Below, piece after piece: positions 2,546 through 39,272 of a stretch of 64,000 nucleotides of DNA. The notes below the pieces were generated by a model. The model saw only the letters and a list, made by a program, of their open reading frames with translations, had not been told where the DNA came from and searched no databases. Location: NCBI GenBank assembly GCA_038496445.1, contig JALMLS010000285.1:62001-126000 (forward strand). The letters are read 5' to 3'. Made by a program: the position numbers and the translations under genes. The stretch's first letter is position 1. Every line of letters starts with the position of its first letter. Source of the DNA: Trichosphaerium sp. ATCC 40318 (lineage: Eukaryota > Protista > Tubulinea).

Positions 2546-4307
2546 ATGCGACTGTACGCGTAAATTTGGCACGTACAACACATTGCAAAGGCCAAACACC
2601 GGGTACGTTGTGGTTTTTTTATACAAATTTGACACTAGCAGCAGAGCTCGTTACAAGTCCATGTCTCTCGTATCTAGACCAACTGCTACTACGAGGTGCT
2701 CTAATAGACAGTACTGGATGCCACTCATGGACCAGCGCAACGTGTACTTTGACACATTGCACGTTTATAAATGTCTGAAACAAAATGTAGTATAGATTCA
2801 GTTGGCAAACAACTGCTTGTCAAAGAACTCGATGAGTGGTACGAAATTACAAATTTGGATACAATAAAAGAAGGCGGACAGAGTGTACTGAAACAATACA
2901 ATGAATCCCTTGCTGCGTGTTTGTCACGTGTTTATCCAGACCACGAGTATGTAAAACAATATTTTTATTAATTGTACTTATGCATGTCTAGGTGGGTTTA
3001 TCGGAAGTTTGCGTATGTGACATGTCTTGAAAAGACCAAGTATATATCGACATTATGTACTGAGTCTAATAAAGGTCATCACCAAGATGCTATTATAATG
3101 ACAAGGACAACCAACGCGATTTGTTGAATTATATTGCAAAAAAAGCAAATATAAAAGTATTAGACGAATGGTATCACATGCAGAAAAAAGATGTATATAA
3201 ATACTCCATAGGTGGAGTACTTAGGTAATATCTCAATACAGTATTTTACCAACGTAATTCGCATATAGACGTCATTACAATGATTCATTATCGAAATGTT
3301 TGAACACATTGTATAAACACAATTGGGAAAAATGGCACTTCCAGTTACGCTTTTGCATGGGCGTTGTATAGCTTCTATACTAATTACTCTATTCAGAAGA
3401 GCACCTAGGAACTACTGGCAAAATCCAAAGAATCAGATGCGTTTCATTAGAAAGCTACAAAAAAAATATAAAATACAGTCAGCTGAAGCATGGTACCTAC
3501 CGTGTATGTCATGTAGTTTCTTACAAAAGAAATTCCTAAGGTATCGATTTTCCATGGCTAAAATGGAGAGTGAGCACGGTAAAGGAATGCTCAGGTATTG
3601 GCCTCAAGCACTGCAACTTGTTGATCCTGTATTCCCATGGGATTGGTCAAAGTTCAAAGTCTCCAAGAAATTCAAACAGAGGCACAAACTACACTAGTTT
3701 TGTCTCTCTGCTCATTTGTTTTATTGTAGAGTACTTTGGAGCTGTATAAAGAAAATATTTCCTACATTAAAAGTAGTCGAAGAACACTTAGTTGGGTCGA
3801 AGGGAGACTCTAATGAGATTATTAGTCTTGATATTTATATTCCTGATATTGACCTAGCTTTTGAGTACCAAGGTATCAAACACTACTGTATACGCATTGA
3901 ATAACAAAATCAAAGGTGAACAACATTACACGGATGGTATTTTCTATGTTGAGCACTTGTCAACTACTCAAAAATCACGTGACGTTGTCAAAATGCAACA
4001 ATGCACCGATGCGGGTACGTTAACTATTTATTGAAATGGCATCACTTTAATTAAGATTATAGGTATAACACTGATTGCTGTGCCTTATTGGTGGAAGCAA
4101 GGAGATATTGGCTCACTTTTGGCTACTATAAACTATGTTAGGCGAGATCTTCGCCTTCGTGTACCACGTGGAAGTAAACCCTTTTCTCAAAGCAGTGGCA
4201 TTGCAGGTACAAGTTTAAAGCACGCTAAATGTATGTCTAACTACTGTTTAGATTCGCGTTTAATGGGTGCACAACCGACAAATCCACTAAATTCCGTGGC
4301 TTTTTAG
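2546..4307 (+). CDS. Trp-rich tandem-repeat protein (3 repeats) with C-terminal Vsr/DUF559/RAP-type PD-(D/E)XK nuclease domain (paralog A)
   Basis: Hand-spliced: MRLPNTGSRARYKSMSLVSRPT...YW..DQRNVIDSVGKQLLVKELDEWY..GGQSVLKQYNESLAACLSRVYPDHEW..(3 repeats)..LDIYIPDIDLAFEYQGEQHY..RDVVKMQQC..GITLIAVPYWW. All junctions GT-AG except one GC-AG. Confidence 0.85.
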
Positions 4308-4369
4308 TACAAAAATAAAACTTGCCATTAACTTGTTGTTTTTACGGCAATATAGTTAGTAAACCACTC

Positions 4370-5346
4370 ATGAACAACTTTCTTAACATAAGCGGTGTTT
4401 TATACACCGTTAGCGCCTATTTTAAACGACCACAGTGTTTTATTCCACACAAACGCGTTGTTGGTACCCAAATTTTAGTATGAGTATCCTTACACTACTT
4501 TAGACGTGACACGCATAGATTATGTCAAGCTGAAATCACAGGGTATTCGTGCTGTCGTATTTGACAAAGGTACGCCGTAAAACGCGTGTAATACAGCTAA
4601 TTCGTGCAGACAATACACTAACCGCGCCTCACGCTGACAATTATTATCCTGGCATAGAAGTAAGGGTTTAATAATGCTCAAATGAACACAATTTACCTAG
4701 GATTCGATGCGTGACTGTATCAATGAAGGTATTACATCTTACCATCCTAGATAGTATTAATCACCCATTGTAGGTCCTGAATGCGCAATATTTAGTAACA
4801 CTGCTGGCAGCGCTGGTAATTTGAGTAATTTGACACTCTTCTGACATTTACATCAGCTGACACTGAGTTTAAAAACGCGCGTGACATTGAAAGGATACTA
4901 GGCATGCCAGTGATACACCACAAGCACCAGGTAAATGTGAATATTAATTAGTATTTGGCTTTTCTTTTATTCTTGCATTCCTCGCTCACTGTTAACTTAA
5001 AAGAAACCTGCTGGCTTTGATGATGTTATGTCACACTTCCCTGGTATGAATCCAAGTGATATAGCAATAATAGGAGATCGTTACTGTACAGATGTGCTGT
5101 TTGGAAACCTAAACGGATTTTTTACAATAAAGACTGAACCTCTCACCACAAAGGGTGAAAATTTTGCAATCAAAATGGTATGTTAATAAGCGTATATATG
5201 TGCTTTTAGTACAAATCCCAACGCTAACTTATTTGTCAAACAAGGTTCGTAATTTGGAATCTTTTGTTGTTGGTAGTCTGGAAAAAAAGTATTGTCCGCC
5301 AGATGTTGATAAGTTCTCTGCAATAGTTGATGCTGCTGAAGTGTAA
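4370..5346 (+). CDS. GEP4: Phosphatidylglycerophosphate phosphatase, HAD IIIA (GEP4/PGPP1 family)
   Basis: Motifs GIRAVVFDKDNTLTAP, FSNTAGS, KKP, IAIIGDRYCTDVLFGNLNG across spliced exons. Confidence 0.85.
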
Positions 5347-5548
5347 AAATTGTAACGACTCTAAATAATACAAAACAGGAACAATTAACAGAACATACAA
5401 CGAACAATCCTTTAGTTTTTTAAATTACGCTCTAGCCCTTTGCAAGCTTTTAAAAGAAAACCTAAGGCGGCCAAATCTAGACTTAACTTACCATTTCCAG
5501 CATAAAAAGGAACGCCAGGTAGCGCATCGTATATTGAGGTTGTGTACC

Positions 5549-7823
5549 ATGCAAATTTCAGCAGTAAGTAAATTCCTATCACATTTCATTCCTTTCTATC
5601 TATTTGTGCTAAAACAACTACTAACGAATGTATTAGAAGCTCTGTTTATGCTTATTGGGCCTTTTGGCTATCGTTTTATCCGACGAAGTTATCGGAAAAC
5701 ACTACGGTACGTCTCTCAATACGTAGTTGCACTACTTGATAACCAATTCCACTGCTTAATTTTTCGATCCTAGTCGATGGCAAAGAAACGCCGTTAGAAC
5801 AGTTCGGTATTAAAGATTTACCAGAAAAGAGCGCTACGGAATTCGATGTTTTTGACATTGGTGACTCATACGAAAGTGTTCCTCCTAAAAGGCTAAATGA
5901 CCCTAAACGGCCTCTTGATGACGAAGAAATGCCTCTTGATGATGAAGAAGCTGAACTTGAGGCAGAACTTGAAGCTGAACTTGCAGCTGAAGAAGCTGAG
6001 GAAGCTGATGTGCCATTTGATGAAGATATGCCTCTCGATGAAGAAGAGTTTCCACTGGACGACGAGGAAATGCCTCTTGATGAAGAAGAGTTTCCAGTAG
6101 AAGATGAAGACATGCCTTTTGATGACGAGGAAATGCCTCTCGATGAAGAAGAAGCTGAACTTGAGGCAGAACTCGAAGCTGAACTTGCAGCTGAAGAATC
6201 CGAGAAAGCTGATGAGGAAATGCCTCTTGATGAAGAAGAGTTCCCACTAGAAAACGAAGATATGCCGCTTGATGACGAAGAAATGCCTTTTGATGAAGAT
6301 ATGCCTCTTGATGAAGAAATGCCTCTCGAAGAAGAAGAAGTGGCTTTCGACGAAGATATGCCCCTAGATGAAGAAGAGGTTCCACTGGAAAATGAAGAGA
6401 TGCCTCTTGATGATGAGGAAATGCCCCTTGATGAAGAAGAAGCTGAACTTGAGGCAGAACTCGAAGCTGAACTTGCAGCTGAAGAATCCGACGAAGCTGA
6501 TATGCCATTTGATGACGACGATATCATAACACAACCGTACATAACTACATTACCGCATGTGCCTCGTGATGAAGAAGAAGCTGAACTTGAAGGCGAAGAA
6601 TCTGAATTTGAGGAACTTGATGAAATGCCAGAAGATGAAGAAGGCGTAACTTACAATGAAATGCCTCTTGATGAAGAAGATATGCCATTCGATGAAGATA
6701 TGCCTTACGACGAAAAAGAGATGCCATTCGAAGAAGACATGCCTCTAGATGAGGAAGAGATGCCATTCGACGAAGATATAGATGACGAAGAGTTTCCACT
6801 TGAAAATGAAGAGATGCCACTAGATGAAGATATACCTCTTGATGACGGAGAGATGCCGTTCGACGAAGACATGCCTCTAGACGAAGAGGAGATGCCATTC
6901 GACGAAGATATGCCTCTTGATGAAGAGGAGATGCCATTTGATGAAGACATGCCTCTTGATGACGAAGAAATGCCTTTTGATGAAGATATGCCTCTTGAAG
7001 AAGAAGAGGAGTTCCCAGTGGAAGATGAAGAAGGTATTACATACAATGAAACACCTCTTGATGAAGGAGATATGCCATTCGATGAAGATATGCCTTATGA
7101 CGAAAAAGAGATGCCATTCGAAGAAGATATGCCTCTATGATGAGGAAGAGATGCCATTCGAAGAAGACACGCCTCTTGATGAAGAAGAAGATATGCCATT
7201 AGATGAAGACATGCCTCTTGATGACGGAGCTGAGGAAGTTTCAGACGATGATTTGGAAAAGGTTGATGAAATGCCTGATATGTTCGGTGAAAAGGATGAA
7301 ACAAACGAAGATAAAAAATCTGGGGATTTAGTGGATGCAGAACACAAAAACAAAGAAGTTTCAGATAAGCATATCCATGGCGTTAAACCTGAAGAAGAAA
7401 CCACTCCCGAGGAAGATACAAAAACTGAGGAAGAGGAGTCGAAACCAGAGGAAGAATCTAAACCAGAAGAGACCAAGCCTGAGGAGACTCTACCTGAAGA
7501 GCCTAAACCGGATTTAACGGCAACAACTAAGGAGATTAAAGATACTAACAAATCAAAACCTCTAGTAGATGATCAATCTTCAAGTACGATTTTTTTTTTA
7601 CCACATGCTTATTATGTTGCAATATTACTCACAATTAAACTTAGGCAAGCGAGGTGGTGGAAACACTTGGTGGATCGCTTTTGTTGTTGTAGGAGTAGCT
7701 GTTACAATTGTACTTGTTCTTGCTATTATCTCTCTTGCGAGGAAGAGACGTGGTGCCACACACTCAAATTACCAAAGATTTGACGACTCTGAAATGCCTG
7801 GATACAGTCCACCTTCGTTGTAA
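5549..7823 (+). CDS. Type I membrane protein with very acidic MP(L/F)DEE repeat ectodomain; 1-nt frameshift at ~7138
   Basis: Signal peptide MQISAKLCLCLLGLLAIVLS; about 400 aa of D/E-rich repeats; EEKP-rich stalk; TM WWIAFVVVGVAVTIVLVLAIISLA; tail RKRR..NYQRF. An extra T at 7138 relative to the paralogous repeat at 6741-6760 breaks the frame. Confidence 0.8.
5911..7225 (+). repeat. Coding minisatellite array (ATGCCT/CCA-CTT/TTT-GATGAAGAA units with higher-order duplications)
   Basis: Dozens of 18-21 nt units; the EAELEAELEAELAAEE block occurs 3 times and the EG(V/I)TYNE..MPYDEKEMPFEEDMPL block twice. Confidence 0.95.
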
Positions 7824-7978
7824 ATCAACAAAGAATACATAACAATAAAACACAACATTTTCACAACGGAATTCTCCTTTGAAAACTCAGTTAGTGTCAC
7901 TAAGAATTGTGTAACTGGTAGCCAGTGAAGTGCTGTATAGGCTACATTTCGAATTGGCGAAGAATACAGAGAAAAAGA

Positions 7979-8104
7979 TTGAGGTTGGAGCAGAGCGATA
8001 AGTTATTACTGATTCAACTAGTCTTGTACTATGTTTGCGTTTTGAGGTTGGAGCAGAGCGATAAGTTATTACTGATTCAACTAGTCTTGACTTATGTTTG
8101 CGTT
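7979..8104. repeat. Two-copy 63-bp direct tandem repeat in intergenic DNA
   Basis: TTGAGGTTGGAGCAGAGCGATAAGTTATTACTGATTCAACTAGTCTTG is present at 7979 and 8042, each copy followed by a near-identical ..TATGTTTGCGTTTT. Confidence 0.95.
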
Positions 8105-8168
8105 TTTTGGCCTGAAATACCCAAAGAGACTTAAAAGTGTTGTCAGACAATAATTTGGTGCTGTTCTG

Positions 8169-10094
8169 ATGAACAACTACAGCCTTCTTATAAGCTTGAT
8201 ACTATTACAGTTCGTCATTGTTCAAATCGTTTCACGTGCGTTTTACTTGGCCTCCAAAGTTTTTTTAAAATGATTTCCGTTTAGAGGTTTCAACGTCGTG
8301 GAATGTTGATACTACCCGTGTCACTTTTACTCAGTCAGGTACTGTCGCTTCAGTAACGGTACAATCTTTTGTCACCTTAAAATCATCTTAAACTCTTCAT
8401 TAGTTTGATTGGTGGCTTCACAACGATACAACGTATGGAAAGAAGTGGGGAAATGATAGTTTGTTAACGATTGATCTAAATGATCCTCTACTGCGCGCTG
8501 CCGCAAAGGTACCGCTGTACATGCAACCTTTGCTGTGTTTACTCCAAAACAGGGTTTAAACGGACCATTTTTGAGGCTTGGAGGCACTCCTGAAGATGAG
8601 ATAATCTACAACATTGATGGCGCTTGCGCAAAAGTCAAAAGTTTTTATGGTTGCTTGACTATTGAGAGATGGACAGAGCTAAACCAATTCTCTATTGATG
8701 TGGGCACGTGGGTTTTTAATCAAGAAATGCCCAATTGATGCGAAAAAGGACAAGATTTTTCGTTCTAACTTTCTCGCTAGGTTTCAAGTTAATATTGGGA
8801 CTGAATGCTCGCTTTGGTCGTACAAGTAAAGATTCGCATATGGATTTCTCAAATATTGAAGCACTGTTTAAAGTTACAACGGCGTCAGGGTAAAAAACTT
8901 GTTTTCTTTTTTTTCTTTTTTTTTGACTATTTGGAAGGTTTCCATCCTCGAATTTATGGGGATTCGAGTTAGGCAATGAGCTTTATGATCGCGTTGATTA
9001 TAGTGTCCTTGCTGCTGACTATATCACACTTGCCGCTCTTATTGAAAAGTACTGGCCAAACGAAGAAAATAGACCAAAGTTCTTAGGTACTGTTTTCAGC
9101 ACGTGATTGTTTAATACTGATGTGTTCGTACTAGGACCTGATTATTATCATCATTCAGGAATCAACCAATTTCTTGAAAGTCCAGCCCAGCCTGGTAAGG
9201 TAATGCATGGAGTAACATACCACGAATATCCAAACTGTTTACCAACATTGGGTGACTACGTTCTCGATCCTGAATGCCTTGATGGGTACTCAATAGTAAA
9301 CAATAAGTGTGTACTCATTAATTTTGGCTGTAGCATGAAAGGTGCTCCTGATTTGATAAACCCAGTACGTGCTAAATACGCACCTAACGCTGAATTATGG
9401 CATGGAGAAGGTGCTGAGCACTCTGGAGGTGGAATAGAAAATGTAACAGACACATTCATTAGCAGTATCTATTATGCTGATTGTCTGGGTTTATTGGGTA
9501 TATTAATCTCAAACCATACGTCATACCATTAATTTAATCAAATCTCAGGGACGCTTAATGTATCTGTAATGCTCAGACAGACGCTTGCCGGTGGTGACTA
9601 TGGCTTACTCGCAACACAAGGGTTTTCGCCACAACCAGATTATTGGATAGGTATTTTTTGCTAGGTTTGTTTTTTGATTCTTTGCTAAAGAATGCGTAGC
9701 TTGGATTTGGAATAAGATTGTTGGCAACAAGGTTCTAGCGACCAAACAACTTGAGGACCATCCTGGAGTTAGGTTATATGCGCACTGTGGAAAGGAACCA
9801 AACACTGTTGTTATTATTGCACTTGACATTAGCAACCATGATGATGTTGATGTTACCCTACAATTGACAGGAGCTCAAAGAACAAGTCACATGAGGGATG
9901 AGTACCACATTACAGCGCAAAACGGAGACTTTAGAGCAAGAAAAGTTAACCTCAACGGAGAACTACTTGAAATGTCTGGCTACAACTTACCTGCTTTGAA
10001 CCCAAAAACAGTATCGTCCTCAAGTACTTTGCATCTCACCAAAGGATCTATTGCCTTCGTAGAGTACCACACCGTAACAACAGCTTGCTCATAA
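8169..10094 (+). CDS. Glycoside hydrolase family 79 (heparanase-like / beta-glucuronidase), secreted
   Basis: Signal peptide; TFDWW, FLRLGGTPED, LIFGLNA, WGFELGNE (acid/base), LWHGEG (nucleophile), RQTLAGGDYGLL, PQPDYW, LYAHC. Confidence 0.9.
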
Positions 10095-10387
10095 TACAAG
10101 CGCCTTCACATTCCAACTAGACTTTATTTCATAATTTCAAGTACATGTTGTTCAAAGTCTACCCGGAGGCGGGCGGTTAGCGACTGTAGCCTACTGACCG
10201 TAAAAGTTTTTTGTAGCTGGCTATAACCAAGAGAGGACTACGACCACCTCTAAGTCTACAAGACAGAGAAAACAAAATCTGTTAAGTTTTTTTGTTTTTG
10301 CTTAACTGCGTAACACGTGTTATCTCGTAATAACTACGGAAAAGCGGTGAATACTACTTGCTTCCCTAAACACTTTCTCAGTACCCA

Positions 10388-11647
10388 ATGACAACCGAGA
10401 GCCCAACCATTCGCGCCTTTAAAGATATTGCTGCTGGCACAGCAGGTGGTATCAGTGTTACGCTTGTAGGCCATCCTTTTGATACTCTAAAAGGTACGCA
10501 AGCGAAATAGCATTGTTTCGACCTTATTATTTTAGTTCGCCTACAAACACAACCAATCAAAGCTCCAATCTACTCAGGTAACTATTTAGTGAAATAAAAC
10601 GCGTAGTAACTCAGTTTCAGGAACGTTAGATTGTGTTGCAAAAACTTATAAATGGGAAGGTTTAAAAGGGTTTTACAAGGTATGCCTGCGTTTACACAAC
10701 CTTATTTTATGCTACGCTAGCCTTTTTGTAACATTGGGAACAGAAAGACAATCGTATTGTCACAAAGTGCCTTTTTTCTTTGTACGGAGGTCTAATCACT
10801 TTCTAAGGGCGTTGGATCACCTTTAGCTGGACAAATGGCTTTCCGTGCTGTGTTATTCTCTGCATACGGTCAATCAAAAGCCATGCTCACTAACAATGGC
10901 GAAACAGAACTCACGCTATTCAAAGGCTTCGTCGCAGGTAAAATACAACTTGTTTTACAATCGTATCATCTGACATTTTATGATTTGCAGGTGCTATGAC
11001 TGGTGTTGCAGCAGCTTTCGCTGAGTCACCAATTGACTTATTCAAAAGTCAAGTACAAATACAAATTTTAAAGTCTAAACAAGACGGCACAAAGCCAAGG
11101 TTTGGTGGTGTATTTGAGTGCGCAAAGCACATTGTAAAAACAAAAGGTGTTGTAGGAGCTTACCAGGTATGTCAAACATATGATTTCATCTCGATGACAC
11201 TTACATTTTAACAAGGGTTTTGGCGCTTCATTGATCCGTAATATTCCAGCAAACGGTTTCTTTTTTGGTGTCTACGCTTTGACACGGAATGCTGCTGAAA
11301 GGCGTTTAAATGAAGGAGAGTCATTAAGCGTTGCTACACAATTGTTCTGTGGAGGAATTGCAGGTAAGAAAATTCCCTATCATTAGTTTCGCTGCTAATC
11401 AGTCATTACAGGTTTCGCTTATTGGGCAGCTACATATCCTACAGATGTTGTCAAGTCAAGCATGCAAGCTGATAGTATAGATAAATCTAAACGCCGGTTT
11501 AAAGGAGTAATAGACTGCTTCCAGCAACTTTACAAAGAAGGTGGACCTAAGCGATTCTACAAGGGATTTACTCCCTGCATTATGAGATCTGTCCCAGCTA
11601 ATGCAGCGATGTTCGCTACCTACGAGTTTGTTCGCTCGTTAATGTAA
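10388..11647 (+). CDS. Mitochondrial carrier (SLC25; carnitine/basic amino acid carrier-like)
   Basis: Three carrier repeats with PFDTLKVRLQ, PIDLFKSQVQ and PTDVVKSSMQ signatures; FYKG..P.IMRSVPANA. Confidence 0.92.
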
Positions 11648-11826
11648 ATACAATTTTTCAATGTTATTGTTATTCATTGCCTGGTGGTAACTAGTAAATT
11701 GCAAAATGTGACACATTGTCGTTAAAAAGCCAACAAATTGAAGTCAACGCTGTTCAGCGCCAACCAACTTTGACACCTGGTACAATTACGTAAATGATCT
11801 CTCATATGCGCGAATAGCCTTTGAGA

Positions 11827-14149
11827 ATGCTTATTTGCTGTATTGGGAGCGCAATAAGGTTATTTAATTCGCAATGGCTGTTAGATACATCCAACCAAGC
11901 ATTTTGAGCCGTAGAACCATACGTAATGATAAAATACAACGGTTACATCTGGCAATTAGCGGCGTCATTCAAAATCGGCTAAAGTACGTGAAAAACGCGT
12001 CATTGACCCTTTAATACCCTAATAAGCGATTTAGGGAACCGTTGACTGAGACCCTCTCCCACGCATCTATACCCTATGTTGTTAGCACAGGGAGTGTACT
12101 TATGACGTTGGACGCTCTAACACAGTACTTTGAGGTCACAGGTACGAAAAACGAGTTAAACAATAATCCTCACGTGCAAAAACAAAAGGTGAACGTTTGA
12201 GTATTCCCCATTTGGCTGGATGGTACAACATAGCTCGTGATGACAGGTACAATATAAATACACATGATGTGATACGTTAATGGACATAATAGTACTGCTC
12301 AAATTCTTGAAGAGTCTTTGAAAAAGTCTTTTCCATCAAGCGACTGGGTGCCATGGAGATTACAGTAAGCAATTTCAGGGAAAATGTAATCTCATTACTG
12401 TACAAAGGGTGCATAATGCAAGAGGCCACTGGGATGGTTTGAAGCACAGAAAGGCACTATTCGATAGTATTGGACAGCAGCTTGACATTAAGCTTATGGC
12501 TTCTTGGTACGATGTTACATTAAGTCAGGTTTGTGAATACGGAGGTGCAGCTGTAATGAACATGTACGCTTCCTCCATAAACTTAAACATAAGTGTAACA
12601 TATAAAGATATAATGGATCACTTGCAAAGGCATTAATAAGACTATATCCTTCTGTAAAATGGGACATATGGCGTTTCAAGTACGTGTTATTTTTAGTACA
12701 AATGTACCATTCCATTAAACGTTTAGGCAAGTACCACGTGGGTATTGGGATTCTGTTCAAAATCAAAGAGATGCAATGGATGTTATTGGCCGCGAACTAG
12801 GAGTTAAAGATATGGCTGGGTGGTATAATATTAGGTACAATGATGTCACCAAAATATCAGGAGGCATTAGTCACAAGTAAGACAATACAATAAAAAGACC
12901 CAACCTTACCTTGTTTGCTTGTAGGTATGCACATTCTATTTCAAAACTACTACGAGACGTTTATCCTAAGTACAAATGGCGACAATCCAAGTTCATGTAA
13001 GCCTCTCTATTAATAAGCCAACTGGGTATTAAATAATACTATGTAGGCAGACACCTATGAGTAAATTGACGTTCATGCCGAAGATATCTACAAAGAATTA
13101 TAAGCACAAACAACCAGAGATTTCAGAGTATGGTACCGTATCACCTCCGGAATACTAATCTAATTGTCATCTTAAAACAAAAGGTATGATGAAAACTTTT
13201 TCGCTGCTCCTGCATCTGAATATAGAAGACTTAGACGAAAGAAACTTGGACCACTTAATTTAGTACAAGGTTCAAAACGTTATAAAAGAATTGTTGCTAA
13301 AGTACAAGAAATGACAAAGTCCTTGAATATTGTAAACCCGGAGTCTTGGTACCTCTTTTACCCACATGGTGTGAAGTATTCTCGGCCTCTAACACATAAT
13401 CTAGGTATCGTATGTCTCCGGATATAATCAAGAAAGCTGGGGGTGCAGGAATACTTCGGTATTGGCCACAAGCACTTCAATACTCAGAACCTCATTTTGC
13501 TTGGAACTGGAGGAAATTTTCTTATTCGATAAAAAAGGCAAAACAGAGGTACACTATGCTCACTACATATATTGTTATCTTAGGGTTTTATTTAGTTGGC
13601 TTCTTGAGTGTATGCGTGTAATATTCCCAGATATTGCTGTGGAGGAAGAACGAAGCATAGGATTCAGAGAAAATGGCACTCCGCTGACAATTGACGTTTT
13701 TGTTCCAAAGTATAACATTGCCATTGAATATCAAGGTACCTCTGAATGTATTTTACACTACTAACTGTATCACAGGAGAACAACACTACCAGGACGTCTT
13801 ACCTTATCACCATGCATCAGCACAAAAGCGGCGAGATTATGAAAAGTTCCAACAATGTGAGGCAAATGGTATTCATTTGGTGCCTTTACCTTACTGGTGG
13901 GATTTACGTGTTGGATCCCTTCGTGCAACTATCAAACATTTTATACCACACGTGCCTCTGAAATCGTCATCAAGGATACATAAACCAGTATTGGATGTAG
14001 ATCAATATAAGGCACTTGACGTTGATAATCTCAAGTGTAAGGTTTTACAACAACCTGGAGAAGTCATTACTTTTGGATTATTTGATGAACACAGACTTCG
14101 AAATGATCAATATAACGCTTCAAATAGTAGGAGACGCTCACCACAATAA
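11827..14149 (+). CDS. Trp-rich tandem-repeat protein (4 repeats, first degenerate) with C-terminal PD-(D/E)XK nuclease (paralog B)
   Basis: Hand-spliced repeats such as ARGHW..HRKALFDSIGQQLDIKLMASWY..GGAAVMNIYNGSLAKALIRLYP..WDIWRF; C-terminus IDVFVPKYNIAIEYQGEQHY..RDYEKFQQCEANGIHLVPLPYWWD. Start uncertain (11827 or 11874). Confidence 0.85.
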
Positions 14150-14283
14150 CACAAAGATCCCGTATAGCAAAACTAGGAGTATTAACCTACGTTGAAGTCA
14201 CTTTCTCATCTTGTACTGATTAAACTGTAAATAAGCATCTATACGCCTAAAGAAAAAGGTTTAAAACATAAGCGCACCATTTC

Positions 14284-14784
14284 TTAACTTTCCTGTCGGA
14301 GTTTGCTATCTTGATCATTGATATTAACAGTGCAATGCATTACTGACGCCTCGATTGACGTGTCAACACCAAAAGAAATCAATAACAAGTACTATTGTAC
14401 ATTTTAGGAAAATACGCGAAAAAAACCGTTCTTTTTTGTTTTTCCGACACTATACTAAAAAAATGTTCGTTTACTAGTGTTACAATGTACATGAGGGTTA
14501 TTTCTAATCTAAACAGAGAAGGATAGTTTTCTAGAAACCCTAATCTTCTCAAAAACAAGTGGTGTGGGCAAACAAAGCGGCCCCATAGGTTTTAGGGCTG
14601 CTATGGGTATATCTGCTTGCTCTGAAAGCGGTTTTGTCTTCATCCAATTTGACGGCCTGTAGTTACGTGGTGATAGAGGTTTCTTCATTAGGTTTTGTAG
14701 AGCCAGCTTTGTTCCTGATTTCAATCCATCACAGCTTTCAGAACGCTGAATTACATTTAAATTCGGCCATTCAGCATTAGACAT
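14284..14784 (-). CDS. Hypothetical protein
   Basis: 91-aa ORF with ATG, plus a plausible downstream exon ending near 14284; no recognisable domain. Confidence 0.3.
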
Positions 14785-15188
14785 TGTATAGACGTGCTTC
14801 GTAATGTTTGTAGACTTGGCGTGCGTAAAAACTGTCAGTTTTCCAAATGCTTTTTATGGAAGTTGTGCGTTTACATCCTCTATAGCTATTCGAGAAAGCA
14901 AGTGTGATACATTAAATTATGTACACTATCAGTTAACAAAAGTACTAAAATGATTGGAACACAACCTATCTGACGTGAGGTTTAACAACAAAACGTTAAA
15001 CTTGGCTAGCAAACGCGAGATTTTAACAACTACAAAAAAAAAGATTCTTCTTCTATTATATTAATCCCACTACAACAATGATTTACATCATTTTAATACC
15101 CCCAACGCTATTTACAGTCATCTCAGACAAAGTACCGTTTTGGGATTTCGTCATCCAAAAAAAAAGTGTAACATAACCGTGTTATCGG

Positions 15189-16813: not shown

Positions 16814-16956
16814 GACTGTGACGCGTAATAACGGCTTCGTATTTGATCACTAAGACAACAAAATGTATGTTGTGTGAGATTTACACGTAATTTACTGTTG
16901 ATTACTGCTGAGCATCGAAAATTGAACGGACAAATACACTTTATCACCACGCACGC

Positions 16957-19288: not shown

Positions 19289-19535
19289 AGACTTCAGTTT
19301 TTTCAAAACTGCATCATTGTAAACTTGTAACTTTTGTAGAATGAAGGTTAATTAACCTCTATGTAATAATCCCTTCCAGTGCTATTCTTTCACATTGATG
19401 TGAAACAATGCATAAATAAATACGGCCCTCCTGACCACTTATCGTTGATAAAATTGCTTGAAGCCAAGGCATCAATATTGTTTTTTTTATAAAGTCTAAT
19501 TTCTTTTGATTTGGTTTTAATAAAGTACAGTTAGG

Positions 19536-22799: not shown

Positions 22800-23226
22800 T
22801 ATCTCTTCACCTCCGCTTTAGCTGTACCAAACAGTGCGAACGCCGTTAGCTTTATTCGCCCTTTTTGTGTGGCTCTTATCAAGTTCGTAACTATCGTAGA
22901 ACGAATTCTACATCTACCTCCTCGGTTGGAGGGGCAAGAAAATACAACAGAACACTAATTCCGGTTCAAGAAAGTTCACACTTAATCTGGTACTTAGTAA
23001 ATCACTTATATTTTAAAAAACAAATGTAGTCAGCTAGCCACTCTGCAAGCTTCACAAGACACAAAGACTACAAAGGAGGGAAAAAAACCACAAAAAGACT
23101 AGTACATTTCTTCAACAAACGATTTTAAAGTGTTTATTGATACACCACCAGTCGAAACAAAAAGTTTGCCAAGTATATATATCTAGTGGAAGGCAGGGGA
23201 CAGTGTTGTAAATATAATTTTTTCGC

Positions 23227-25530
<2,304 letters not shown>

Positions 25531-25623
25531 TGTTCACCTTCTTCAAGTCTGCCTTAATACAAAAAAGTTGGAAAGTTTAAGGCGAGAGGAAAACAACGAC
25601 ACCGTGATACAAAAGGACAAAGT

Positions 25624-26985: not shown

Positions 26986-27094
26986 AAGGCAGGTGATGCA
27001 TTAATGTGACTATGCGCTGTGGTATGTGAATGGAAGGAAAGCCGTTGAAATAAAAAATCTAAGAAATATGCTCCACTCATTACTACCATCAACA

Positions 27095-30000: not shown

Positions 30001-30321
30001 CCATCTCCTCAGGATAGAATTTCAGCCGTATTTGCTACTAGAAAAGCGGCGTGCATGGCTATTGGTAACGTTGACTCTCCTGTCTGTGGAGCCATATGTA
30101 CGTAGCATTCCGAATCTACTGAAGTATCCCAAAACTGATTTTTTATTGCTACAGATATTTCTACAGAAGGTGCCAAGTTTGTTGACTTGAAAGACTTCAA
30201 ATCTAACATGGATTTTACAAATCGCCGTCCAAAAGAACAATGGTGGCAAGAGCTTTTACAGGTTGTAGGTCAACTTAGAAGGCGTCCAGAAAAGTATGTT
30301 AAGCCTATTGTTGTTTGTTGA
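27095..30321 (+). CDS. PFK: ATP-dependent 6-phosphofructokinase (eukaryotic tandem-duplicated type)
   Basis: [50 protein letters not shown]; second half GAPAPG.N, PATISNN, EVMGGRCGYL, GHIQQG. Confidence 0.97.
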
Positions 30322-30571
30322 ACTAACACAATATCTGTAGATTTCAATGTGAAACTTGTAAAAAGTGAGCTGGCCATAGACTATAAGGCGTGTTTCGTTT
30401 ACCAAATAAAACTGTTGTGCTTGCTTATAAATGTTGTATGTTGATTCGCTCAATGGTGGTATAGACAATTAATTATGTAACAAGAAAAACAACATGAGAA
30501 AATCGCTCTGGGGTCAATCATATTCTCCAATTCTTTTCGCAGCGAAAGCAACAGACACATCTCAATCTGAC

Positions 30572-33261
30572 ATGAAGAAGCAAACTACTCTTAATTTTAA
30601 TACTGGTGGAAAAACGCAAGCAAGTTCGAAGAAGAGACCACCTCCTGAATCAAAAGACACGCCACCACGCAAAAAGGCTAAGAGAGAGGGCAAAGAAGAG
30701 AGTTCCGTAGAGGAAATTGAAAATGTACTTAATTATTGTAACGGTTTGCATTAAATGTTGTTTAGTGGTCTGATGATGATCTACCAGTGAAACCTGGGCT
30801 TGTGGCACCAACAAAAGCAGAAAAGAAGCCAATCACTAACGCCTTTCGCCAATACGCGTCTAAAAGGGCTGCTAATAGCCCCTCAGTACCAACATGGTAC
30901 TACAACGCCGGTAAATCATGGAGCGCGTACACAACGGCTACAAGCGCCCGAATTGAAGCTGCATATAAATCACGCAAGCAGCACGTTGTCAGAGTGGACG
31001 GTTTGCGATTTGTTGATTTGTCAAAACTGATACAACGGTACGGATCCATCTCAACAACAATGGTAGTAATAACTAACTGGCGTTTACAGCCGTTATGACG
31101 ATTACTTTTCCACGCGCTGTCGTAGTATAAAGCGTGAAGGTCCTGGAGGCGCAGCCAAGCCCATAGCACCTGTGACAATAACGACACCAATCAATTTCCA
31201 GTGGGCATGGCGAAACGATAAGGGCGCTATGATACCATACGAGCCAGCTGTAAATGCTGTTTTAGAGGAAGCCTACAAAAGGAAACACCCAAAGTGTTCC
31301 GTAGACAAGTGCGTAGACTATGCTTCTTTTCAGAAAACATTGTCTTAGTCACGTTTATAGGGAGAGGTTTGTTGAATTTAAGACAATGTCACAAAGAAGG
31401 ATGGATAATCCTGGTAAATGCCGTATTGTTAAGCGTCAGCATGTAAAAGTGCCTACAACGCCAGCTAATGTTGCAGCAAATATACCAGCTGATTTAACGC
31501 CTGTATGGTCGTGGCTTAGAAATGATAACGTTTGGGTACACCATGTGCAGCATTTTTTTTTCTTCTCTGCTCTTTTTTTTTATTGTCTTTTTGTTTGAAG
31601 ATTGTGGACTTGCAACCTTGTATTAAATGTTGTGTTAAGGTTCCATATGCCAAAGAAATTATAGAGAATATCGAGAGAGCTTTTATACATAAAGATGAGA
31701 CTAAAGTCAGAGTTGACGATGAGCGTTATGTTGATCTAGTTAATTTTCTTCAGAGGTAACTCATTTCAGCTCTTCACTTACCAAACGTTATTGTTTTGTT
31801 TCTTTTTCTACAATTGTACTAACTTTGTTAAAAAGGAGGTATGATGGGTTTGATAGAAAGAGATATATCAAGCGGACAATACCTTTCAGAGTGAGTTACT
31901 CATTTCATTTTTTTCTTCTAACCAATCTATCTATCAAGAAAATTCAAGCTTCTGATGACCTTACGCCAGCACAAAAACAACGTGCAGAGAGGAGCCGCAA
32001 AGAAGCACTAAAGAGGTTAGCTATACTAAATGAAAAAAAGAAACAGCAAGGATTCTACTCTAAGAATAAACCGCCTGTGAAAAAAAGTCCATATTTCAAC
32101 AAATCAAAAAAACCTACTGGAAAAAAAGCTATTCTATATGATGTCATGAATGATGATGACGATGATGTATTGATATTATCAGCGTCAGATATCCCAAAAA
32201 CAGAAGACAAGGAGAACTACATAGTAGTTAACTTTGATAGCGATTCAGGTGACTTCAAAACTAAAATTATTTTTCTTTTTCTGGTTCAACTTTTTGCTAA
32301 CATACTCTCAAGATGGCGAGTCTGAATCAGTTGTTGATGATCCTCTTAAAGACAAAGACGTTCTTCGCGCTGAAAGGCGTAAAAAATACAAATGTGGTGA
32401 TAAATTCACAGTGCTTGCAGATGTACCAACATGGGCACAAACACTAGTTCATGTGAGTTATTATCTTTTTTCTTTTGTTGTTCAACTTTGTGCCTGTCTT
32501 ACAATTCTATTACTTAGAAAAAAGCTGTTGCTGCTGAGGAACCAAAATTTGAGCCTAGCAATGAAATGAATACTATCGTATCAATATGGAAAGGTGACAT
32601 AACTTCGTTAGGTATAGTTTGTTAAAATTGCTACAGGGTTTCTTTTTTAACATAAACTTGTAGAGGTGGATGCAATTGTTAATGCAGCCAAGCCTTCACT
32701 TTTGGGTGGTGGAGGTATTGATGGAGCTATACATAAAGCTGCAGGAAAGGGTCTTGTAAATGAATGCGCTTTAATAGGTGGTTGTGATCCTGGGGAGGCA
32801 AAGGTACTGAAAGGACTAAAGTGAAGTTGAACCAGTTTTTTTGTTTCCACAAATCTAACTCGAAAATAGATCACCTTGGGTTACAAACTACCTGCACTTC
32901 GCGTTATACATACTGTTGGACCTATTGGAGAAGATGCAGATACTCTACAAAAATGCTACATTAACAGGTATTTGTTTTTTCTTTCTCCAATACATGATTT
33001 TTCTCACTTTTTTCTAGTTTAAACAAAGCCAAGAAAAGGAAATTGAAGACCATTGCGTTTTGTTGTATATCAACTGGTATTTATGGATATCCAAATAAAG
33101 AAGCTGCACATGTTGCTTTAAAGACAGTGAGAACTTGGCTTGAAGATGAAGACAACAAATCTGCTATGAAACGCATTGTTTTTTGCGTCTTTTTGAAGAA
33201 AGATGCTATTCTGTACAGTAATTTGATGAAGAAATATTACTTCTCAGCAGTACCAGAATAA
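30572..33261 (+). CDS. Three WWE domains + MacroD-type ADP-ribose hydrolase macrodomain
   Basis: Three W.W/Y....W..Y......IE.AY.......RFVD...QRR units; macrodomain [56 protein letters not shown]. Alternative start at 30494. Confidence 0.88.
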
Positions 33262-33606
33262 TTTCACTGTAATAAAGTATTATTAGATAAACTCTCATAT
33301 TGATGAAGTCTGCTGCAATTTTTTTTTCACGTGAACCTGGAAAACCTTCACGTGATTTTGCTTTTTGGTTGCTACACCAAAGTCTGTTTAAAGTACCCAC
33401 CACGTTCATTTGCAAAGTTTTAAGTTATTAAAATAGACTTGTGCTTTAGAGAACATCAACGTGTCAAATCAAAACAAAATAAAAAAAAGTGTAAACATCT
33501 TTGCAAAGAATCTCCCAGTACACAAATCCATTAATATATCACTTTATTGTAAACTCTTGTACATTTACTACCATGTCTTGGTTTCTTTTGTAACCAGCCA
33601 ATTCTG

Positions 33607-34995
33607 TTATCTCTCTGTGTCAATTGTAACAATAGTACCAATTCGGCTATTGGTTTTATTATTAAGCCTATAAGGGTAAATGATATTCCGTATTTTAGGA
33701 ACAAAGATCGCCACAGCCGCTACGACCACAACCAATACGATAACTATTACGACTAAAATCATAACCAAAGCGAGTGGACCACTATTCTGTTCATCTTCGT
33801 TACATGCACTTCCAATAAGTACAATCAATTGACCAACTTGATTAATTCCTACGCCATGAGTATAAGTGAAAAAAAAGTCGAAGTTTTTTATGAAAGTTCT
33901 CGAACCTTCTTTAAAGCAAGCATCTGACCTTGATAGTGTTACATTATCTAAATCTATTTCACAAGCATCCGTTGAATTTATAAGAGGTATTGTTGAAGCA
34001 GACTGTGCGAAAGAGTTAAGTTAGAAAAAGGATCAAATCAAGTCTTCTGAGACAAACGTACATCATCTTGTATGTCTATCGTTATATTCCCTTGAAAAGT
34101 GACGCAACCACCAATAGAAATACTTGATTCACCAGAAGCAGTTAGTGTTGTATTACCCAGAAATATGATATCTCCTACACGTAGAAATTGTCAGTAAGGA
34201 TTATTTTATTTTGTCGTTGAAACTGAATAAACCAAAAGTACCAGGAACAATGACTGTTTCATCAATTACAGAAGCATCACCGTCAACATAGGCTGGTGGA
34301 TGTTTTTCGTCACTACAAACTAAAGCTCTCGCTTTTCCACAAGGAATATCATTTAAACCTGTAAACGGTCACGTGATTAGCCTTATTTTTATTAATTTTA
34401 TTCGTACCTCCACGCCTACTCTCCATACATCTCTCAGGTTCTCCGTTGTCGTCTACAAAACTTGGTTGACCAATGAGGAAGTTTTCATTCAGAAATTGTG
34501 GAACATCGTCATCGTATGATGTGAATAGAGTGGTTTTAGTAAATGACGTGTTGTCACTTTGCCAGTAAAAAGTTGACAACGCTTCAACACATTTTGTACA
34601 GTTTCCTCCTTGTCTACAGTCACTGCATGTATTGGAAGAATAGTTCCGTGGTCCAACACGCTCTGCGTTTAGCCAATAACCTCTTGACCCAACAGCAGGA
34701 GGAAGTTTATCTTGAAACTCTCTTGTTCTGGCTTCTACAATAGTCGAGTTCCTACATGAAGTTTGTACCGTTATGTCGATAATAAAATAAAAAAACGAAC
34801 AATTAGTAACACAGACGCTAGTTATGAATTGGGTTGAGAAAAAAAGCGATTTTTAATATGTTACCACGTGTAAGCGTACCTCATAGTGCATTCATCACCC
34901 CCTTTTTTAAAATCCATTCTTTTGGTGGAAATCTCTACTGGTAACAGCAACAATAACGATATAAGTAGAAAACCTGCTTTATATAGATACGCCAT
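33607..34995 (-). CDS. Type I membrane protein with C-type lectin-like domain
   Basis: Signal peptide MAYLYKAGFLLISLLLLLP; GQPS..GEPERCME..LNDIPCGKARALVC (CTLD C-terminal pattern); beta-rich stalk; TM and short tail. Confidence 0.65.
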
Positions 34996-35124
34996 GTCGT
35001 TTTATGATACGAAAAGTTACGAATGATCACAAGATTTTGGCTGGCAAAAGTCAACAACGAAAAGCTGTCATTGCTGATGGGTGTTACTGTGTGTTACACG
35101 CTTAAATAAATATTCATCCTCCAT

Positions 35125-36468
35125 TTAGATGATGGACTTTACAGCAAGCTGTAAGGTTCTATAAATTTGTTAAGAAGAAAGAAAAATGTAAAAGAGTAAA
35201 AGTATGTACAGTTGTTGTGATTTTTTTAACCAGGCTTTGTTAAATCTTTTCATTTCCCAAATCACATCTGGGTACAATTGTTGTAAAGCGGCTGGGTAGT
35301 ACCTATACATGTATTTTCCCCCGAGAAATTCAAGTTGTCTCGTAGAAACACGGTACCTAATCCCAATCAGACTATAAAAATAAAAACTACAAAGTTCATA
35401 AGTTACCATTCAGAAGGCGAACTGATACCATAATGCGCTCTTACACGCTTCAAAAATTGAACCTGACTCTGCATAGTACTCCAGCGACCATTGCGCCTTT
35501 TTTTGGGTGGAAAAAGCCGTTCAAGTGCGTTTGGTAGACTTGTGTACCTAAAAAGAAAAGAATTAATATAATTTCAGATACAAAAGAAAAGAAAGACCTT
35601 GCTAAGATTGTTTCTCCTCCAGCATCAACAATTTGATCCCTGGTGACATGATTCCAACATTCCTTCTCGTAAACACGTAATTGTTGTCCAATGACATTAA
35701 ACATATCTCTCTGGCGAGTGAGGCTGTCCCAGTAGTCAATAGGTAAGAATCTACCAAGAATGAGGTTTTTATCGATTATTTTTACCGCTTGGACTCACGA
35801 AAACTTCCAAGGGAGCCAATTATGTGTTGGGTATAACGCTTGCAAACACTTCGACAACGACAAATTGTACCTGTGTAAAAAGTCAACAAACCTATTATTC
35901 ACTTGCACTTATCGATATGCTAGTGCACTACGGGTGTACTTACATGCGTAAAACAGCGTATCCTTCTGGTGTCTTCTCAAACACGCCCTGTGGTACTTTG
36001 TACCAACCATCAAGATTCTTGACATTTAATTTTTTGGCAGTAGTGTTAACGACTGTTTGTTGGTGTTCAATTTGAGTCCAATGGCGTTGAGGTGCTTTTC
36101 TAATGCAATGTTTAGATGTAACAATGTGTTGTGTGCCCTCGTACTTGAAGCGCCATAGTGCCCACGCATAGCGTGGATATACGTCCTGCAGAGCTTTTGA
36201 AACAGAATTACCGTATCTACAACGCGTTAGACAAAAAGAGTGCAAATTGCTGTTGTGCTGACACGCTTAGTACGCCCCCACCACCTTTGGCGTGAATTTG
36301 TCGCGCTGTAGCATTATACCAAGCTTCTAAGTGCGTTACGCCAAGTTTTTTGCCAAGTTTATCAAACGCTTTCGCTCTATTGTCTATACGCGTCCAAGTA
36401 CCTCTGTATCAATTAGAAGAAGCTTTTTCTCTGCCAAGAACTTACCGACAAACTGCGTTTGTGCTCAT
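35125..36468 (-). CDS. Trp-rich tandem-repeat protein (4 repeats), nuclease domain absent (paralog C)
   Basis: Hand-spliced MSTNAVCRGTW..RAKAFDKLGKKLGVTHLEAWY..; four repeats including the capping repeat, then KSQQLTLQLAVKSII-stop where the paralogs continue into the nuclease. Confidence 0.75.
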
Positions 36469-36708
36469 CACTGTCACATTGCTCTTTTGAAGTTAACGTG
36501 CTGTGGCTCTGCTTCACGTGGGCGGTTGACTTTTTTTTTATTGTGGCTTAACAGCTCGTTAGAAGTCTTGTTCGCCAGTTTTCCAGCTCCATCAGCAAGT
36601 GATTACCATTTGGTCGTGTAATTTGACATTACATCCAAACGTTGGCATACAACGCTCATGGCGATGGAATTATTATTTATACAGTCTATACGTCAGTTGT
36701 AGTAACCA

Positions 36709-39272
36709 ATGTAAGTCTTTTAGCCTGTTCGCACCCAAACAGCTTACAATTACGCGTTAGGCGCGTCTATCACCTTCAAGTAATTAATAATGTGGCTGAA
36801 CAGCTTAAACTCAAACACCTTGATGAATGGTACTCAACACCAACAAAAGACGTAGTAACACACGGCGGTGGTAGTACACTAGCGTAAGTCTTTACCACAT
36901 CGGGTAAAAACGCGTAATAACGCTTTACATAAATTTTAGATACTTCCAAAACTCAGTTTCAGTATGCTTACATACGCTGTATCCTAACCACAAATGGATT
37001 CCTTGGAAATTTGCGTACGACAGCTGTATTTCACATAAAGAAATAACTTCCAAAACAAGAAAAGTACCAAGGCAGTTTTGGAGCAGTATCAAGAACCAAA
37101 GAGCTCTATTAAACCATATTGGTAAAGAAAATAGTTTAAAGCATCTAGATGATTGGTATAAACTTGAATTTGATCACGTGTTTAATAATGCAAGCGCACT
37201 CTTGAAGTAAGTCTTCTTCCAACCGCAAACATACACGACTACAATTACTAATGACACTTCGTAGCCACTACTATGATGGATCGCGATTGTATTTATTGGA
37301 GAGCGTGTTTCCAAAGCATAGTTGGGATCCAAGTAGATTTATGTACGTCCCATAGTTATCACTCTTTATGCTTACTAAAAATAACAGCAACTTGCGTGAA
37401 TCGACAAAATCTAAAAGTAACGAAGGCTACATCAATACTTTAGCTCAAAGACTAAATGTTAAGTGTCTTGATGATTGGTATGCTGTAAATAATACAGATT
37501 TATACCGTCACGGTGGAGACAGGATGAGGTTAATACTCAACACAATACAATTCTAAATATCAACATAGGAACATTGTAAATAGCTCTTTAATGACGCTTC
37601 TCACTAGAATGTATCCGCGCCACAACTGGTCAGCAAGTAGCACGTATGTATGCTATATCTTTCTTTTACTCATCTTGTATTTGTAGAAATAACCTAAAAG
37701 ACAACGATCAAAAGAAAATGATACTAGAGAAAACTGCTAAAAAGCTAAATATAAAAACATTAGATGACTGGTATATTGTATCTTATGATGCGTTTACCAG
37801 TCAAGGTGCAAACGGGTTTCTCATGTAAGTAATACCTATAACATATAACACTAACAAGTATCATTCAGGGATGAATACAACGGGTCTATTATTGAATGTG
37901 TGGCTAGTGTCTATCCTGGACACGAATGGAATAAAAATCGTTTCAAGTACGTCATTGAGTTACTGACTAAACGAAACCTTAATGTTTCTTAGATCTTCTA
38001 GTTCTCTTAATAAAAATGAACGTAAAGAATTATTTGATAAGATTGCTGCAAAGCTAAAAATAAAGGAGATAGAACAGTGGTATAGTATTGAGTTTAGCAA
38101 AGTTTTAAAAAATGGAGCAAGAAAAATAATGTCGTAAGTGAAGCTTTTCGTTTTTTTTTGTAGACTTGCTTAACACTTGTTCGTTGATCTTGTTATTTTA
38201 AGAAATCTATGTAATGGTGATGCATTACATTCTTTACTATCTCAAATATATCCACATCAACAGTGGTCTCCATGGAAGTTCATGTAAGAATAGTATTTGT
38301 AACGTTTTTCTTATACCACTTTTTGCAAGGTCATCACAAGGATATTGGCGTTATGTTAGCAACCAAAGAGATTTTCTACTCTCTGCTCAGAAGCATCTTG
38401 GAATTGAGGAACCTGAAGAATGGTATAGTGATTATTTTGGGTTGGCGGCCTAATATAGTGAAGGTATCGCGTTTCAACACAGCAAATACGAGACTTGGGA
38501 GGTCAAGGTATCTTGACGTATTGGCCACAAGTTCTGGTACGCGATTCCTTCAGTTGTTAAGACCTAACACGTACAAAAGTTGCGTATCGAGCCTGAGTTT
38601 CCATGGAAATGGAAGAAGTTCTCTTATTGGCAAGGCAGACTATCAAAGCAACGGTACATTTACACAAGTTTTAGTGATGTTTGTTTGTTTATTAGAGTTG
38701 TAGGCAGCTAATTAAGTGTTTGCAAGTAATTTTCCCACGTGCGCAAGTACTTGAAGAACACGTTATAGATTTAAGTGCAAGCAACCAAGAGAGAGTCACT
38801 CTTGATGTGTACATACCGGAGTTTCATCTAGCACTTGAATATCAAGGTAAACTGACGAACCGATTTGCGTTCTTTCTGACATACGTCATTAGGAGAGCAT
38901 CACTATAGGGATGGAGTATTCTTCACTGATCAATTTTCAGCCATTCAACGCACAAGGGATACAGAAAAGCTTCAAAAATGCTCAGACATAGGTATGTTTC
39001 ATAGACGATACTGTTTTTACGAAAGGGATTAACCTAACGTAGGAATTTGCTTGGTTCATATCCCTTATTGGTGGGGCGGTGGTATAGACGAGATTGTCAT
39101 GACACTGCGTTCAAATGCAAGTCATATTGACTTGTCAGACATAAAGTGCCAGAGTGACGCAAAACCATTAATGGCATTACCTGAAGAGACCAACGTACCC
39201 TCAAAGGGTATAAACCTAATGTTTCCGAATAGTAATCAAAACATGCATTCTCCTTTGTACGCTACTCAATAA
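36709..39272 (+). CDS. Trp-rich tandem-repeat protein (6 repeats) with C-terminal PD-(D/E)XK nuclease (paralog D)
   Basis: Six repeats with the L.K.LD(D/E)WY..G(G/A)..Y..S..L...YP.H.W...F pattern; C-terminus LDVYIPEFHLALEYQGEHHY..RDTEKLQKC..GICLVHIPYWW. Confidence 0.87.

Follow-up and report, generated by a model that had tools for sequence, protein, structure and literature searches.

The 64 kb window analysed here (positions 62,001 to 126,000 of the forward strand of contig JALMLS010000285.1 from Trichosphaerium sp. ATCC 40318; all coordinates are counted from its first letter) is eukaryotic DNA of approximately 38% G+C, whose genes are interrupted by very short introns. It carries four paralogous genes, here named A, B, C and D, whose predicted products consist of tandem arrays of a 74-residue repeat module, which in A, B and D are followed by a C-terminal nuclease domain. 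Both elements were scored with profile hidden Markov models (HMMs), and the coordinates of the genes and their main parts are listed in Table 1. The four loci had been proposed by a model that saw the nucleotide sequence only (the sequence-only reading), and all of them exist where it had placed them, gene C being located on the minus strand, a point that had been left unstated; the proposed starts at 2546, 11827 and 36709, however, differ from the modelled starts at 2661 and 11874 and the probable start at 36658.

Table 1. Genes A to D of the 64 kb window, their nuclease domains and selected introns
Feature	Position	Strand	Description
Gene A	2661..4307	+	10 exons, 402 amino acids, 3 modules and nuclease domain; predicted start codon
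Gene A, intron at the array/nuclease boundary	3682-3729	+	GC donor (GCACAA), compared with GTACAC/GTACAT in B and D
Gene A, nuclease domain and tail	exons 3730-3872, 3916-4014, 4063-4307	+	nuclease HMM E-values 1.3e-15, 1.1e-4 and 2.7e-7; D, P, E-Y-Q-G, H, D and K intact
Gene B	11874..14149	+	13 exons, 561 amino acids, 4 modules (first degenerate) and nuclease domain
Gene B, nuclease domain and C-terminal tail	exons 13584-13735, 13776-14149	+	nuclease HMM E-values 1.6e-10 and 3.5e-20; motifs intact
Gene C	35173..36547	-	at least 7 exons, at least 361 amino acids, 4 modules, without nuclease domain; model begins at 36547, 5' end provisional
Gene D	36783..39272 (from about 36783)	+	at least 15 exons, at least 603 amino acids, 6 modules and nuclease domain
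Gene D, intron	38284..38329	+	46 nt, phase 2; spliced contig joint 38283>38330, GT..AG
Gene D, intron splitting W|Y of the last module	38423..38463	+	41 nt, phase 2; spliced contig joint 38421>38463, cut +1, GT..AG
Gene D, intron at the array/nuclease boundary	38654..38703	+	contig over exon 38703-38847; 11 loose letters match the last bases of exon 38580-38653
Gene D, nuclease domain and tail	exons 38704-38846, 38893-38991, 39043-39272	+	nuclease HMM E-values 1.5e-12, 2.7e-4 and 2.7e-5; motifs intact

The gene models were built by hand by chaining open segments via the shortest in-frame GT..AG junctions, and each of the four genes yields an uninterrupted reading frame after splicing. The introns, of which there are 6 to 14 per gene, are spliceosomal and 35-87 nt long, with GT..AG ends; their donors resemble GTAAGT/GTACGT, and the branch site often resembles TACTAAC/TACTAAT. 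The boundary intron of gene A with its GC donor may be a rare GC-AG intron or carry a weakened splice site. The 5' ends are the weakest part of all four models, and several combinations of start and intron are possible for C and D. In gene D, the first exon probably begins with ATG 36658, with one short intron of ambiguous junction behind it, and the model of gene B is uncertain in its 5' exons and in the exons from 12997 to 13184. Only a single small public transcript run (X1) contains some of the C/D region; its contigs cover part of D only and agree exactly with the modelled D introns 9, 10 and 12; gene D is thus transcribed and processed as modelled. The confirmation of splicing by RNA that the sequence-only reading had called for is thereby obtained for three D introns, the coverage of X1 being limited to part of this gene.

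The arrays are organized in a regular exon pattern. A typical repeat unit is encoded by two exons, one of around 46-51 codons, which runs to the motif GG-x2-(I/L)L, and one of around 23-26 codons, which ends with W-x2-W-x-F. The array introns are in phase 2, except for one phase-1 intron in the doubtful 5' part of B and one phase-0 intron in the last module of D, so that modules could be gained or lost without a break of the reading frame. In the final unit of A, B, C and D, the W|Y pair is split by an intron according to the models. Genes C and D are divergent neighbours arranged head to head, and the candidate first exons in the gap between them (36550-36790; ATG 36658 on the plus strand and ATGs 36609-36659 on the minus strand) would overlap or adjoin each other, pointing to a bidirectional promoter region of less than 250 bp used by both genes. 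The pair is not the product of a recent duplication, since the paralogs are old and share pairwise identities of only 25-37% among A-D.

The repeat HMM has 74 positions; it was first trained on the units of the window and then re-estimated with 1,053 units of related proteins. The consensus of the module is approximately GYW-x4-NQR-x-F-x-D-x-L-x3-L-x5-EDWY-x-V-x4-I-x3-GG-x2-LL-x2-Y-x2-S-x4-L-x3-YPE-x2-W-x3-K-F, and the final unit of each protein belongs to a distinct subtype with the motif GG-x-GIL-x-YWPQAL. The HMM recognizes 17 units in the window, three in A, four in B (one of them degenerate), four in C and six in D, thereby reproducing the copy numbers given by the sequence-only reading. 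A six-frame scan of the whole 64 kb returned repeat matches of 17-61 bits at the A-D loci only and nuclease matches in A, B and D only, while the top score in five shuffles of the window was 11.4 bits. The repeat has no Pfam match above threshold and the searches returned no FAST, OPR or PPR matches. Partial matches to the Pfam families Myb_Rap1, SAM_TNK and CH cover around 20 residues of the module, summed over repeats, and were not taken as domain membership. Mixed-exon alignments made with MAFFT were discarded, as the 'YP..W..W.F' half of the unit had been placed over the 'P..YW..NQR' half.

The nuclease domain was analysed in an alignment (A4) of 61 relatives and four exons of the window. 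D45, P49, E56, Y57, Q58, G59, H62, D81 and K84 are at least 90% conserved across these 65 sequences, and A, B and D keep all near-invariant residues (D, P, E-Y-Q-G, H, D, K and P). The motif that had been read from the sequence, D-x8-9-EYQGE(Q/H)HY...RD-x2-K-x3-C...GI-x-L...PYWW, is intact in the tails of all three proteins. An AlphaFold2 model of the domain (predicted local distance difference test (pLDDT) 88.4, predicted template modelling score (pTM) 0.82) consists of a helix, three strands, two helices, a strand and a helix and contains the alpha-beta-beta-beta-alpha-beta core fold. The domain shows a catalytic-type pattern, with an Asp on strand 2 (D45), a Glu on strand 3 (E56), a His after strand 3 (H62) and an Asp in the next helix (D81); the equivalence of such residues to D51, H69 and D97 of Vsr was judged by order, spacing and literature rather than by superposition. 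The order of the residues and the first two spacings resemble the catalytic set of the homing endonuclease I-Bth0305I, which comprises Asp196, Asn208, His213 and Asp222 (PMC3239194). The top rows of a Foldseek search with the model contain I-Bth0305I, mitoribosomal proteins of T. gondii, Vsr, R2 endonuclease domains and PvuRts1I (E-values of 1e-3 to 1e-1, probability up to 1.00), and the model is also similar in fold to solved RAP modules.

At the level of Pfam families, DUF2726 matches 34 of the 65 nuclease domains (best E-value 5e-6), and the relative P0045 reaches 29.6 bits with a cut-off of 24.7, while the RAP model (PF08373) matches none of the 65 domains at E-values up to 1. A published classification lists DUF2726 twice, in a group with Vsr and DUF559 and as a separate family (PMC3424549). 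The fold, the Foldseek rows and the DUF2726 matches bear out the placement in the Vsr/DUF559/RAP branch made by the sequence-only reading. Vsr, DUF559 (3hrl) and DUF2726 have the same fold and the same kind of conserved acidic and His residues; however, they are single-domain bacterial proteins, and the zinc site and the intercalating Trp pair described for Vsr are not found in the domain described here, whose own motif is E-Y-Q-G-x-x-H-Y, followed by RD-x2-K and PYWW. A sequence search of the PDB with the last exon of gene B gave no match, and a search with the nuclease profile returned Xis as sole match (E-value 0.52), which was taken as chance.

Gene C ends after the fourth module, and the nuclease HMM finds no match anywhere downstream of it. 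The gene keeps a donor-like GTACAT (35209-35204) at precisely the position of the pre-nuclease intron donor in A, B and D, and reading through this site leads to a stop 15 codons on, after a short hydrophobic tail. Judged from these remnants, gene C looks like a derivative that lost its nuclease exons. Since many relatives also come without a nuclease tail, proteins made of the array alone may serve a separate function.

The genes of the window belong to a large family, far larger than the four genes described by the sequence-only reading. A search of 1.84 billion cluster representatives with a 49-position profile of the first-half exons (A3) retrieved 5,600 proteins at an E-value of at most 0.001, 2,586 of them at an E-value of at most 1e-10. 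The number of modules per chain ranges from 3 to 25, with a maximum of 22 matched stretches by the A3 profile and 25 by the repeat HMM. About half of the best 150 relatives possess a nuclease tail: 79 match EYQG-x2-H or PYWW and 64 match EYQG-x2-H. A, B and D share only around 30-34% identity with their closest relatives (P0014, a marine protist transcript), and the named sources of family members are Cavostelium (Amoebozoa), a heterolobosean, MMETSP and metagenomes. One intronless relative is encoded on a eukaryotic metagenome contig, where it adjoins actin and Skp1. The proteins are basic, with isoelectric points (pI) of 8.8-9.8 for A, B and D and 9.9 for C, and a family median of 9.07 with 82% of the members above 8. 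In P0086 and P0114, an ATP-dependent DNA ligase domain follows right after the nuclease, and the same domain is weakly matched in P0053. Other relatives carry further sequence behind the nuclease domain. In P0035 and P0107, the nuclease occupies a central position and a second repeat array follows it (in P0035 at residue 1070 of 1641, with five further modules downstream), and the C-terminal extensions of P0059 (790-1055) and P0070 (570-854), around 270-290 residues long, have no Pfam match.

The fold of the array was predicted for three consecutive modules of P0014, using an alignment of 138 equivalent triplets. The model (pLDDT 96.2, pTM 0.82) is all helical, and each unit contains five to six helices. 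The first is 14 residues long; it is followed by a short one that ends at DWY, one or two helices over the variable stretch and GG-x2-LL and one over S-x4-L, with short turns around the Trp residues. Comparisons between predicted models on both sides gave template modelling (TM) scores of 0.65-0.70 over 213-221 of 225 residues with ESM Atlas clusters of DUF4046 proteins (PF13255), which are mostly from Bacillota and consist to 97-100% of PF13255 members, and of 0.54/0.60 with a eukaryotic 'DUF4046' cluster; the likeness to the bacterial family is thus nearly full-length. In sequence, a module of P0014 aligns with positions 14-87 of the 90 positions of the DUF4046 model at 15.3 bits (E-value 0.03), which is below the cut-off of 22.8. 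A precomputed PF13255 match is recorded for P0002 only, and the nearest ESM Atlas feature cluster holds some DUF4046 members. Protein homology searches based on shared words retrieved 2 and 12 family members only and no bacterial DUF4046 proteins. The common Pfam families in the Atlas listing of the bacterial clusters, which was consulted rather than the proteins themselves, include no nuclease family. On the basis of these models, the module, which has no solved structure, is best described as a distant, uncharacterized relative of DUF4046, itself an uncharacterized family; no paper mentioning DUF4046 was found in the literature and, beyond this distant link, no experimental study or name for the family. 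The sequence-only reading was therefore right that the repeat is uncharacterized, but the module is not absent from databases. It was also right that the repeat is none of PPR, OPR, TALE and PUF, given its length, its five to six helices and the lack of a Pfam match above threshold. Weak resemblances in fold include SAM domains and the CCD of Slx4, the docking domain for the Slx1 nuclease.

The nearest relatives of the nuclease domain outside the family are encoded by viruses. A DNA pattern encoding EYQGEQHY is matched by at least 117 viral contigs, compared with around 0.4 matches expected by chance, a figure which is our own estimate and assumes approximately 1e11 bases in the viral collection. 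The nuclease HMM matches all 117 viral reading frames with a median of 59 bits, and a comparison of the protist and viral nuclease profiles gave a probability of 99.8% and an E-value of 1.6e-29 over 94 columns, although the comparison is somewhat biased because the viral loci had been picked by the motif. The loci were found with the degenerate DNA pattern, whereas a search of the viral contigs with P0055 as query found nothing. The helical repeat is found in none of the 117 viral frames, and a Foldseek search for the module among viral structure predictions remained without a match (best E-value 0.23). Instead, seven of ten scanned viral N-termini carry treble-clef zinc-finger-type domains, namely CapR, DUF4379 and/or DUF723, with four copies of DUF4379 in one protein. 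Phage group II introns have recently been reported to encode proteins with a series of three to five CapR/DUF4379/DUF723-like domains ahead of an EDxHD/Vsr-like domain, in which the array was read as DNA-binding and which form a large unrecognized outgroup of homing endonucleases (PMC12350094, 2025). The founding member of the EDxHD group, I-Bth0305I, combines N-terminal helix-turn-helix-like NUMODs with the catalytic domain and cuts DNA (PMC3239194). These proteins (I-Bth0305I, 3r3p, and the outgroup described in PMC12350094) share with the A-D family a tandem array of small modules N-terminal to the nuclease; however, their arrays consist of zinc fingers or NUMODs, whereas the array described here is built of up to 25 all-helical, DUF4046-like modules of 74 residues. 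In contrast to homing endonuclease genes, A-D are nuclear genes with spliceosomal introns, which lie among cellular genes and outside of self-splicing introns and inteins. In terms of its predicted architecture, the A-D family follows the known design of tandem binding modules joined to an EDxHD/Vsr nuclease, here with a new type of array in nuclear protist genes.

The tandem arrangement, in which the framework is conserved while exposed residues vary, is reminiscent of TALE, PPR and PUF proteins and, as the array is naturally fused to a nuclease, of TALENs; however, the repeats of these proteins are helical hairpins of 33-38 residues, whereas the module described here comprises 74 residues in five to six helices and has another fold. 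The sequence-only reading had pointed to the stretch after WY as the part that varies in every repeat, and every variable stretch it quoted is present in the model translations. This stretch forms an amphipathic helix, of which positions 31 and 36 (V and I) are buried and conserved, and positions 30, 33, 34 and 37 are exposed and variable. The per-column entropy of the 1,053 modules shows that positions 42, 43, 46, 47, 53 and 57 in the next helices are as variable as the exposed positions after DWY, so that the exposed face of this helix varies like those of the other helices and holds no special place; the argument for a modular reader that was built on this stretch fails. The 13 most variable positions have entropies of 3.5-3.9 bits each with broad residue spectra, no code positions with a restricted residue alphabet were found among the 1,053 modules, and the excess mutual information between positions does not surpass 0.16 bit, i.e., there is almost no covariation. 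A TALE/PPR-like code of one unit for one base is thus not supported by the module sequences, as the variable positions simply correspond to exposed, basic helix faces. At the exposed positions after DWY, the residues K, R, S, T, N and Q are favoured, as would suit contact with nucleic acid, and Lys or Arg is conserved at module positions 10, 18, 19, 23 and 69. The basic proteins and these exposed residues fit nucleic-acid binding, and the idea of a modular reader is a reasonable hypothesis by analogy with the viral relatives. It is tempting to speculate that the modules are a new class of modular DNA readers, each unit contacting a fixed number of base pairs via the basic variable helix after DWY, with 3-25 units specifying long targets of a nickase and a ligase resealing the nick in some relatives; we regard this elaborate version as a long shot.

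For the function of the proteins, we give about an even chance to array-guided nicking or cutting of DNA, i.e., to a DNA-directed nickase or endonuclease. The rigid chain of all-helical modules in A, B and D would hold nucleic acid, most likely DNA, and would place the C-terminal, Mg-dependent EDxHD/Vsr-type nuclease such that it can nick or cut at or beside the bound site, while the product of gene C would bind without cutting. We infer that nucleic acid is bound by the modules, that contact is made via the helix after DWY and that DNA is the substrate; the last of these is favoured by the viral DNA homing-endonuclease-like kin, the full set of catalytic-type residues and the fusions to DNA ligase. 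Several points weigh against this proposal: position 58 of the nuclease is a Gln, whereas the DUF559-type motif E-x-D-G-x-x-H has an Asp; ten exon-sized pieces of the window gave no meaningful Pfam match, the pieces being too short; and the evidence for the fold derives from relatives that are around 30-43% identical to the window proteins. An alternative that we consider unlikely is that the proteins are organellar RNA-binding or RNA-processing factors, a counterpart of RAP, FASTK and OPR proteins, in which the array binds mitochondrial transcripts or rRNA and the Vsr-like domain cleaves or clamps RNA. The RAP HMM was undetectable in Amoebozoa and Excavata in a published survey (PMC8190603), and these lineages without detectable RAP are those that hold the A-D family (Cavostelium and Heterolobosea), so that the family could be the counterpart of RAP there. 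A Tubulinea cluster of the ESM Atlas that was automatically named 'RAP domain-containing protein' is a near neighbour (score 0.95), the nuclease fold resembles RAP modules equally well, and the models of A and B begin with Arg/Ser-rich, acid-poor stretches, an argument for a presequence that is weak because the N-termini are only predicted. However, the Pfam RAP model fails to match the domain, the nearest kin in sequence are the viral proteins, the catalytic-type residues are all strictly kept and the ligase fusions are sensible for DNA alone. In addition, FASTK, OPR/HPR-RAP and apicomplexan RAP proteins carry FAST_1/FAST_2 domains or OPR or HPR hairpin repeats of 38-40 residues, which are not found upstream of the nuclease here, where the repeat is a 74-residue multi-helix module.

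It is less probable again that the family constitutes a conflict system, either of diversifying nucleases that discriminate self from non-self DNA, for instance of giant viruses or other invaders, or of domesticated or selfish descendants of homing endonucleases, with the array providing target variety across paralogs. The nuclease is common to phage and other viral homing-endonuclease-like genes, the paralogs are many, old and divergent, the phase-2 introns permit in-frame gain and loss of modules, and nuclease-less members such as C could be antidotes or decoys. Yet A-D are ordinary nuclear genes with many spliceosomal introns, situated among housekeeping genes and outside of introns, inteins and obvious mobile elements, and the repeat module is missing from the viral structure predictions and the 117 viral frames. 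The lowest probability among the readings considered is given to the array as a protein-interaction or scaffold domain, next to which the nuclease acts without sequence guidance. The weak likeness in fold to protein-binding modules (Slx4 CCD and SAM domains) and the lack of a code-like pattern in the modules agree with such a role, but the basic character of the proteins and the conserved Lys/Arg positions argue against it; moreover, the viral kin have arrays read as DNA-binding at the corresponding place before the nuclease, and 3 to 25 copies per chain are more typical of polymer readers.

Other genes are found close to A-D. Around 230 bp upstream of gene B, a last exon (11399-11644, plus strand) is mitochondrial-carrier-like by eye, and around 700 bp downstream of gene D, a C-terminal exon (39953-40276, plus strand) resembles a Ras/Rap-like small GTPase by eye and ends with the CAAX box CSIL. 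A long acidic low-complexity gene (5929-7800, plus strand) encodes many MPLDEEE/MPFDED-like units, behind which come a Lys/Glu/Pro-rich stretch and a hydrophobic segment; the Ser-rich mirror open reading frames on the opposite strand are probably not genes.

Taken together, thousands of proteins, from at least Amoebozoa and Heterolobosea, join a confidently predicted but structurally unsolved repeat to an intact nuclease of the Vsr/homing-endonuclease type. To this family, genes A-D add clean gene models, of which D is partly verified by RNA, and a neighbouring pair with and without the nuclease (D and C). Should the arrays read organellar RNA, the family would take the place of RAP proteins in lineages in which the RAP HMM detects no members. 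Arrays that read DNA, in turn, would represent a new protein-based targeting principle and a possible scaffold for engineering; and if they are modular DNA readers that act together with a nickase and a ligase, the family would amount to a naturally occurring 'TALEN-like' system that cuts and seals by protein alone, and would offer a new scaffold on which to design DNA-binding proteins.

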